Part shown: positions 38,029-41,000 of the stretch, in pieces
How the letters are laid out: every line of letters starts with the position of its first letter
Position numbering within the stretch: the first letter of the stretch is position 1
Source of the DNA: Dimorphilus gyrociliatus
Taxonomy: Eukaryota; Animalia; Annelida
DNA: 64,000 nucleotides
Assembly: GCA_904063045.1 (NCBI GenBank)
Contig: CAJFCJ010000007.1
Location: 4,161,404-4,225,403 of the forward strand
Reading direction: 5' to 3'
Position numbers and translations under genes: made by a program
The notes under the pieces: generated by a model
Told to the model about the DNA's origin: nothing
Seen by the model: only the letters and a program-made list of their open reading frames with translations
Databases searched by the model: none

Positions 38029-41000
38029 CTATTTCTGAGTAACGAAAGGATCGTCGACTGGAGATTTGACATTTTGCGGTTGATATTCATTTTTACTTTC
38101 TGGAGGCTGATTCTAAAATGTTAAAAAGTAATATAATTATCTAGTTTTATATTCAATCTAGTCATGAAAGAAAATCTCCCTTCTTTCTCGGTTTTTTCTT
38201 ATTACCAGTTAATATAAATTTAAGTTTCCTTTTCTTAAAATAGGTGAATCGAGTAAAGCTTTATATATATATATATATATATATATATATATATATATAT
38301 GTCAATATAATAAAACAATTATAATAGCGTGGTCAGGCCTAAGCTGATTTCAATAGCATTGATTTGAGGCTTTTAAATGAAGGATAAAAGACAACGCAAT
38401 TATCTAGAATTCTATTTCAAACTCACTGGATTTGTCTTTAAATTGTTTGAGTAGTCGTTTGATACTGTGAAGAGTTCGGAGAAATTTGGTCCTCCTGTAG
38501 GCGCGTAATCAGCTGGTATTAAGAAAAAACGATTGTAATTATTTAGAAAGATCGTCGACCATCTCTTGTACTACTGAAATACTTCATCTATTTTTGAAAT
38601 AGTGTTGGCTATTCACAAGACTTTGTCGATCTATATTAACTTACCCGCACTCGGAGCGTAACTATGAGTGGGAAACGAATCTGTGTCCGCTCCTGCAGTT
38701 GTAGGTATCCCGCCAGCTTCGTGTGGAGCATTATGCATTACTCCAATCTATTTAATTTATATTAATAATTGATTGAATAGTCTACTAATTACACGAAAAA
38801 GATAATTTAACTCACTTGAGTAGTTCTAACGTGATATGGAAAGTTTGAATTAGCAGCTGACGGCCTCGTCAATATCTAAAAAATGGAATATTGAAAGAAA
38901 TAAGGTAATTATAATCACGATTTTCGTTTGTCAAGTGCTTCCAAAAGAAAAAAAAAGAGAGAGAGAGATAAAGAAAAGACAATAGATGTAAAGATTAAAG
39001 AAAACTCCAACAACAAATAAATCATATATATCAAGCAAAAACAACTTTAAAAAAGTAATAGCTATACGTGTAAATAGCAAATATACGAATATTAATAAAT
39101 TAATTATTCATAATTATTAAGTTAGTGCATAAATGAATATTTCCATCTAATTTTAAGAATTCTCAATAGCGAAAAGTAATAAGTCTAAATTTTTCAATAT
39201 TTAAAATGTGCAAAAAGAAATATAAATAATGAAATTAATAAATAAATTCCAGTGCAGAAAATATTAATTTTGTTAATTTAATTAAAAACAATCTCTTTTT
39301 ATAAAAAAAACAAGAAAAGGAAATTTTTAATTAAAATTTTCGTTTTTAATATATAAAATAAAAAATTGTGTTAAAATGTTAATTAGTATCGTTTTATATA
39401 TAAGAAAAGATGTGAGGTTTTTTATTAGTTTTATATATATATATATGTTTTCCTACCAAAAATGAGATATGAGCTAGGAAAGCTATAGAAACTTCCACTC
39501 CATTTACAACTTTCTCTCGAGCCCATTTATCAATGGCATAATAGGCGATCAAAGCGAATACAGGCATAGCCAAAAACCTGAAGATAATATAGAGATTGAG
39601 GAAGCTAATAGAAGCTCTTTTTTCTATGTACCAAATACATATACAGTAAATATCTAAAAAAAAAGTAAACTTATACATAGAGTTGACTATGAGTTGCGTT
39701 GCTTAAGCATTTTGTTTTTAATAGAGGGCACTAATAATCTTCAAGACAATGTAGAAGTTAAGGAGAGAAGAGAATTTTCCCCTTTACCCACATTCTATCA
39801 AATTTCACAGAGTAACTCCTGCCTAGCATTCTTAATTAGGAGAACTAAACAAGGAAAAGGGTGGAGTTTCTTACGCCTCTATTATAAAATTGTGGGCGTT
39901 TAAAAGAATAGAAGGGGGCAAGAGGGGGAAATGTCTCATCTTTCCTTCACATTATTTATGAAAACTTTTTTTTTGTCCCTCACCAAAAACAAAAAATAGC
40001 CACCGAATTGACATGAATTTTCAAAAATGACCACAACTTTTTCCCGAGCCCATTTATCCATAACATACATCGCAATCAGAACAATGACGATCAATAACCA
40101 AAACCTAATACATATTTACAAACCAATAAATAATAAAATACTTATATACTTGTTTAGATATAAATATATATAAATTTTATATGTAAATATATAGGGAGGT
40201 AGCAAATCTTTTAATCATAAACACTGGATGCTTTAGCTGGTATAACAGCTGGGTTTGAAGCAAATTAATCATTAAGAATTATCATTTTATCTAAAATATA
40301 CCAATAAAATTGAATAGGTTAATGTTCATTAATATGCCGAGCGGTGGAATGGTACGGCTGATTTTGGGGGAGGAAGGCAAGATCAACTTCTTTATAACTT
40401 AATGCTCTTTTTTTTAAAGATAACTTACTAGAAAGACAAACGAAAGGAACGCTATTTGAAGGCGAAGTGCAAAGTTAATAGCAAATGGTCGAATCCATGG
40501 TTCAGCTGCCCAAGTCATAGTGAAGAATGTTACAGGAAATAACCAAAACCTAAGTTTAGAAAGTTGTGTTTTGCAGGTGCCTAATTAATATTCAGCTTCG
40601 AAAAAGCTCTTTTTTTAAAGACAATTTGATTGATGGAAAAATAAATGATCAACTCTTTTGGTCCTAGATACAGTAGATTGATAGGAATATCCTAACTACT
40701 TACCATAGAGTATAGAAGATAAAGAAGGGGTAGTAAAAGCGAGACTTTTCTGGATAATGCTTTAATGTAAAGAAAATTGCATAGCAAAACCATATCCACC
40801 CCACTAATCGAAGGCCAATCAATCCGTAACCAGCTGGTGATTCGTACAGGTATAAGACAAGACCAGGATCAAAGACCTATTTTATAGTTGTAGAGAAAGA
40901 ATATTATAAATATATATGAGTCGATACTCTAATTACCTGTGTTTGATAAATGAACAATCCAACATAAACAAATACGTAAATAGTCATGAAAACGGCAATT

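Follow-up and report, generated by a model that had tools for sequence, protein, structure and literature searches.

The question raised by this locus is whether three neighboring exons of a Dimorphilus gyrociliatus membrane-protein gene are interchangeable versions of the same piece of protein and, if so, what would confine each message to one of them. The exons (here, A, B, and C, in the order of transcription) lie in tandem on the minus strand of the 64,000-nucleotide stretch of contig CAJFCJ010000007.1 that was analyzed (here, the window, to which all positions refer unless another locus is named). Each is 121 nt long, and the array is enclosed by two constitutive exons (window 40876-38816). 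An earlier note, made from the DNA letters without database searches, had assigned the gene to TMEM145 and described the three exons as alternatives for the last part of its seven-helix domain. Our analysis agrees with the assignment. In an exon-by-exon Pfam comparison, PF21892 matched at 42638-42384 and the seven-helix domain PF10192 across 41349-39457, so that both the N-terminal domain and the seven-helix domain by which members of the TMEM145/GPR180 family are recognized are present, and the protein is 50 to 60% identical to named TMEM145 proteins. The peptides of exons A and C recur letter for letter in the public models DgyrCDS6698-6701 (GenBank accession no. CAD5117958-61). Database searches were made one exon at a time; full-length work relied on proteins already in the database (P0331 and P0396-P0398), and exons were joined only for the local frame check described below.

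The array is composed of the following elements, all on the minus strand and given in the order of transcription.

40876-40704 (minus strand): upstream constitutive exon, 173 nt, encoding TM5, a cytosolic loop, and the start of TM6; donor gtaagt.
40549-40429 (minus strand): exon A, the divergent variant, 121 nt; strong, consensus donor gtaagt; weak pyrimidine tract.
40428-40105 (minus strand): intron between A and B, 324 nt, with a run of eight A residues (A8) 13 nt after the A donor.
40104-39984 (minus strand): exon B, the intermediate variant, 121 nt; donor gtgagg; DKWAREKVV is kept, and P5 and N25/G26 are missing.
39983-39578 (minus strand): intron between B and C, 406 nt.
39577-39457 (minus strand): exon C, the canonical variant, 121 nt; donor gtagga; best pyrimidine tract of the three.
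38875-38816 (minus strand): downstream constitutive exon, 60 nt, which starts with ATA and encodes a conserved cytosolic stretch.

Each of the three exons is preceded by AG and followed by GT, passes from phase 2 to phase 0, and holds 40 open codons after its first base. That first base, a G in A, B, and C alike, completes a Trp codon begun by the TG at the 3' end of the upstream exon. With these splice sites, 40-codon frames, and matching translations, the description in the earlier note (three exons of exactly 121 nt, their phases, and their peptides) is correct. The flanking exons are well anchored: the upstream exon (40876-40704) matches PF10192 positions 128-186 (E value, 3.8e-14) and is present in all four public models, and the cytosolic motif of the downstream exon (38875-38816) shows little or no variation in the family alignment. 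An A-rich motif, AAAAAAGAGC, was also seen on the minus strand of the introns at about 40619-40604 (before A), at 40418-40403 (just past the A donor), and at 39624-39612 (about 40 nt before C); it may reflect low-complexity chance or a shared splicing element.

What the exons contribute to the protein was read from an AlphaFold2 model of DgyrCDS6700 (P0397, the C form), which was built from a 36-row alignment and has a pTM of 0.73. The model consists of an N-terminal beta domain and seven helices. Exon C corresponds to residues 333-372, in which TM6 extends to residue 346 and, after a two-residue break, TM7 occupies 349-374 (pLDDT of about 89 to 96). By this model, each 121-nt exon is predicted to encode the outer (luminal or extracellular) half of TM6, a tight TM6-TM7 turn, and TM7, and the "KWAREK loop" of the earlier note would really be that turn together with the luminal start of TM7. 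The view of the three exons as homologous alternatives for the last part of the seven-helix domain is thereby kept and made more exact. Residues W350, R352, E353, and K354 are constant or almost constant across the TMEM145 family alignment. For the A form (P0396, DgyrCDS6701), AlphaFold2 returned the same helix-turn-helix with a longer break (residues 347 to 351, with a pLDDT of 68), a hairpin that carries little weight as evidence, given that the alignment is made up of canonical forms.

Exons B and C agree at 20 of 40 residues and at 70 of 121 bases, and both match the last part of the 224-position PF10192 profile (positions 187-224), with E values of 1.5e-8 for C and 1.4e-5 for B. Codon by codon, 12 are identical, 20 differ nonsynonymously, and 8, three of them inside the DKWAREKVV block, differ only synonymously. 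Because eight shared residues are written with different synonymous codons, the comparison argues that B and C are both held by selection on the protein.

Exon A is much further removed, sharing 9 of 40 residues with B and 9 of 40 with C, and its first 12 bases are the first 12 bases of B. The change of motif that had been noted for this first copy is real, with EPWIRPF in A where B and C carry DKWAREK. A search of Pfam gave no match for A at an E value of 1 or less, and a local TM7 profile scored it at 0.5 bits, which is noise; profile membership was therefore dropped as evidence for A. It was replaced by an in-register permutation, in which A was compared with 85 family TM7 exons and with 5,000 shuffles of A. 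The in-register similarity of A to the family corresponds to a z value of 5.4 (mean score), and none of the 5,000 shuffles reached the observed mean or maximum. Of the eleven family positions with the strongest conservation, A retains six (F1, P5, W18, R20, F39, and L40), and it has lost the consensus residues E21, K22, and H36. The best match of A in the locus of Owenia fusiformis is one of the three TM7 exons of that locus (tblastn E value, 7e-4). Open 121-nt windows bounded by AG and GT arise by chance about once per 2.5 kb in the loci scanned (77 candidates in about 190 kb), so the anatomy alone is no proof for A. Taken together with the Owenia match, the in-register similarity indicates that exon A is a diverged homologue, not a chance window.

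The alternative variants in the D. gyrociliatus annotation derive from PASA transcript assemblies (PMC7854359). Each of the four public models of the gene contains one copy of the exon (C three times and A once), and none contains two copies or zero. C is found in DgyrCDS6698, DgyrCDS6699, and DgyrCDS6700, and B is found in none of the four. In DgyrCDS6701 the upstream exon is joined to A, after which the model continues through the A donor into the intron, adding VSYL before a stop codon. Because this model joins the upstream exon to A, the A acceptor is used in vivo. The model itself may represent an unfinished or internally primed transcript; the A8 run 13 nt past the A donor could explain a truncated, internally primed cDNA.

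The public models of TMEM145 in D. gyrociliatus appear to be incomplete, lacking exon B and the putative signal-peptide exons. On the minus strand, a signal-peptide-like exon (43485-43396) starts with an ATG at 43485 and is followed by an exon at about 43323-43249 with the family motif FLTRFCFLS. Both are absent from DgyrCDS6698-6701, which begin further downstream, two of them in apparent intron sequence.

To see what the array permits, the reading frame was checked locally over the exon combinations none, A, B, C, AB, AC, BC, and ABC. With A, B, or C alone, the frame stays open into the downstream exon. When all three are skipped, the TG of the upstream exon and the A of the downstream exon form a stop codon at the junction, and AB, AC, and BC meet a stop 16 to 17 codons into the second exon. 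It is thus true, as the earlier note had stated, that zero or two copies break the frame. Its companion statement, that inclusion of all three copies would restore the frame, is right in arithmetic (363 nt) but fails in practice: in that combination, B is translated in a different frame and runs into a stop at its codon 17. All of the stops produced by zero, two, or three copies sit upstream of further exon junctions. Of the proposal that exclusivity is backed by frame and nonsense-mediated decay (NMD), the frame part holds, in that only single inclusion is open and the stops precede junctions, and the NMD part is what would be expected by analogy with Caenorhabditis elegans, in which NMD is required by 14 of 19 clusters of non-3n exons (PMC4165533).

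Other means of exclusion were considered as well. Steric exclusion was rejected, since the introns are 324 and 406 nt long and would have to be under about 50 to 60 nt. Incompatibility of U2 and U12 splice sites was rejected likewise, the donors (gtaagt, gtaagt, gtgagg, and gtagga) being all U2 type and none of them A/GTATCC. An ungapped scan of four introns, over the parts within 38000-40156 and 40195-43600, revealed no docking/selector complementarity above shuffled controls, a result that leaves room for short or gapped pairing. Because no intronic complementarity rises above the shuffles, frame and NMD together are, to judge from the sequence, the only visible means of enforcing exclusivity.

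Orthologous loci were scanned for 121-nt open exons bounded by AG and GT and with a six-frame TM7 profile. The following TM7 exons were found.

Owenia fusiformis: three TM7 exons, at 22622-22741, 24306-24425, and 26079-26198 of its locus (L009), the 121-nt exons beginning one base earlier.
Paralvinella palmiformis: two TM7 exons.
Lamellibrachia satsuma: two TM7 exons, the second beyond the annotated gene end.
Lineus longissimus: two TM7 exons.
Ostrea edulis: two TM7 exons.
Lingula, a chiton, amphioxus, and a springtail: one TM7 exon each.
D. gyrociliatus paralogue: one TM7 exon.

A comparison with orthologs, which the earlier note had proposed as a check, thus turned up arrays in five other spiralians, together with RefSeq isoforms that swap exactly this exon. 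Equal-length RefSeq pairs exchanging exactly these 40 residues are Lineus X1/X2, Ostrea X1/X2, Mercenaria X1/X2, and Mytilus galloprovincialis X2/X4. The ortholog arrays and the isoform pairs support a real alternative use of the TM7 exon.

Phylogenetic trees of the 40-residue exons are largely unresolved (40 columns), and for this reason no copy-by-copy orthology is claimed. A spiralian FW-type group that includes B received modest support (84/93), and C groups with the single-copy exons of nonspiralians. Beyond its own genome, C has its nearest annelid match in the distal exon of Lamellibrachia (23 of 40 residues). A grouping of A with the second oyster variant (91/84) joins long branches and was not trusted. 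An ancient two-type array is treated as a lead, not a result.

Some further observations were made in these loci. In the Lamellibrachia locus (L016), the second TM7 exon (29064-29183) is of the FLAMP...DKWAREK type, has AG and GT at its borders, and sits about 700 bases past the annotated gene end at 28384; because it lies there, the public Lamellibrachia TMEM145 model appears to be truncated. The Owenia protein has weaker second matches to its own locus at 4065-4229, 5898-6050, and 27160-27285 of L009 (52 to 57% identity), which suggests that the N-terminal domain and the region following TM7 hold more duplicated exons. D. gyrociliatus has a second TMEM145-like gene (contig C3:2222678-2223554; DgyrCDS2418-2422) with similar intron positions and very short introns, and its single TM7 exon is 31/40 identical to exon C.

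In our judgment, D. gyrociliatus TMEM145 probably contains three tandem-duplicated, mutually exclusive exons, of which C would be the default, A a minor and strongly diverged form, and B a conserved form so far unobserved. Splicing would pick A, B, or C as the partner of the upstream exon and attach the chosen exon to the common downstream exon. Through the 3n+1 length of the exons, the early stops in the shifted frames of B and C, and the TGA at the skipping junction, messages with zero, two, or three copies carry a premature stop and would be expected to be cleared by NMD. The variants would alter the luminal mouth and the TM7 face of the helix bundle, with the GOLD domain and the cytosolic tail constant, and exon choice might tune the binding of a partner or cargo, or trafficking. 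A functional difference between the A, B, and C variants, which the earlier note had also put forward, is purely what we infer.

A simpler history, which we regard as unlikely, would have C as the only functional copy, with A and B as decaying relics of an ancestral array whose inclusion is splicing noise cleared by NMD or intron retention. Such a history would fit with the public models, since all full-length ones use C, none uses B, and the one with A is unspliced on its 3' side. It would also fit with the lack of a Pfam match for A and the weak match for B, with pyrimidine tracts in A and B that are poorer than that of C, and with the C3 paralogue, which has only a C-like exon. Yet both A and B, if they were relics, would have had to keep 40 open codons, a length of exactly 121 nt, and intact AG and GT sites, in AT-rich DNA with an expected stop roughly every 12 codons. 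The DKWAREKVV block of B has been kept through synonymous changes, and A keeps 6 of the 11 most conserved family positions. Moreover, the loci of Owenia, Paralvinella, Lineus, and Ostrea hold extra copies that are equally divergent, and in Lineus and Ostrea these copies appear in RefSeq isoforms.

Even less probable, in our estimate, is that A serves as an alternative terminal exon, so that the receptor would end four residues past TM7 (VSYL) and lack the conserved cytosolic tail. DgyrCDS6701 has exactly such a structure, and weak variants of a poly(A) signal lie downstream of A (TATAAA at 40396, GATAAA at 40291, and ATTAAA at 40215), but no canonical AATAAA was found in the examined part of the intron after A. 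The A donor is a consensus gtaagt, the length and phase of A fit the downstream exon exactly, and oligo-dT could have primed internally at the A8 run, 13 nt past the donor, on partly spliced RNA. We give a similarly small chance to exclusivity that is imposed mainly by competing RNA base pairing, with a docking site and selectors as in Dscam exon 6 or 14-3-3 zeta and with NMD as a backup. This mechanism is reported to be common in clusters of at least three tandem-duplicated exons and to be able to arise from the duplication itself (PMC6071210); against it stands the ungapped scan of the four introns (over the positions given above), which gave nothing above shuffles. Mutually exclusive use of A, B, and C is the preferred reading.

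The TM7 array is not the only place in the gene where exons resemble each other. In the GOLD/N-terminal domain, two neighboring exons (43151-43083 and 43045-42953, minus strand; 69 and 93 nt) share a 12-residue motif, with an intron of only 37 nt between them; of the two, the public models take the second (43045-42953). RefSeq isoforms of Lineus, Mya, and Branchiostoma exchange a neighboring portion of the luminal domain (about residue 86 onward). Two 72-nt exons (41986-41915 and 41610-41539, minus strand) each encode the start of TM1 (ILETNMGFL... and ILETDIAFL...), and here the public models take the first (41986-41915). As 72 is a multiple of three, this pair has no frame protection. The Lingula isoforms X1 and X2 exchange the same TM1 segment. 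Elsewhere in the window, a minus-strand frame at 47335-46667 forms a long open stretch of proline/serine-rich repeats, placed within the sole GC-rich region of the window (46001-48000; GC content, 0.42; GC skew, 0.30).

The type of splicing proposed here is ordinary, a textbook cluster with a frame-based fail-safe that here lies in the TMEM145 family. It resembles the homologous exclusive clusters of C. elegans (Kuroyanagi et al. 2014, PMC4165533) in that tandem exons of equal, non-3n length preserve the frame only when a single one is included and in that the intervening introns are too long for steric exclusion. It differs from those clusters in having three copies instead of the usual two, in a role of NMD that is predicted here, and in the much greater divergence of A (9 of 40 residues against each other copy). 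Closer counterparts are the TMEM145 exon swaps in Lineus longissimus, Ostrea edulis, Mercenaria mercenaria, and Mytilus galloprovincialis, which concern the same exon and the same 40-residue unit, with the 121-nt length equal to that of Dimorphilus where it was checked (Lineus and Ostrea). These four species show a canonical and a divergent copy, two in all, whereas Dimorphilus and Owenia have three.

Alternative transmembrane segments are also chosen through mutually exclusive splicing in Dscam exon 17 and in exons of the insect sodium channel and ryanodine receptor. As in those cases, the tandem exons of TMEM145 would exchange a membrane segment and leave the rest of the protein constant, but TMEM145 is a GOLD-7TM protein and not a channel or Ig receptor. 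With Dscam-type docking/selector clusters, the gene has in common a multicopy array and several independent clusters per gene (two more exon pairs here); it differs from them in its tiny copy number and in that no docking/selector complementarity was detected in its introns.

A search of the available literature that combined TMEM145 with mutually exclusive splicing yielded only unrelated papers, none of them describing the exon swaps of the other spiralians. A function for TMEM145 was assigned only recently: in mouse outer hair cells, it anchors stereocilin via its GOLD domain and binds tubby via its seven-helix domain (PMC12789471). A wider hypothesis, which is tentative and for which we see a rather modest chance, is that exchange of the outer half of TM6, the turn, and TM7 is an ancient annelid and perhaps all-spiralian module. 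It would comprise an ancestral FL/AREK type, a spiralian FW type, and a diverged third type without W-x-R-E-K, and, combined with the GOLD-domain and TM1 exon pairs, it might give up to 12 receptor forms that differ in cargo or partner specificity. If this is true, the exchange module would be a small combinatorial system in a family without described isoform biology. Since annelids, a nemertean, and bivalves have all kept arrays at this one position, the TM6-TM7 hairpin stands out as a likely specificity-determining surface, and the natural A, B, and C variants are useful probes of which TMEM145 helices matter.
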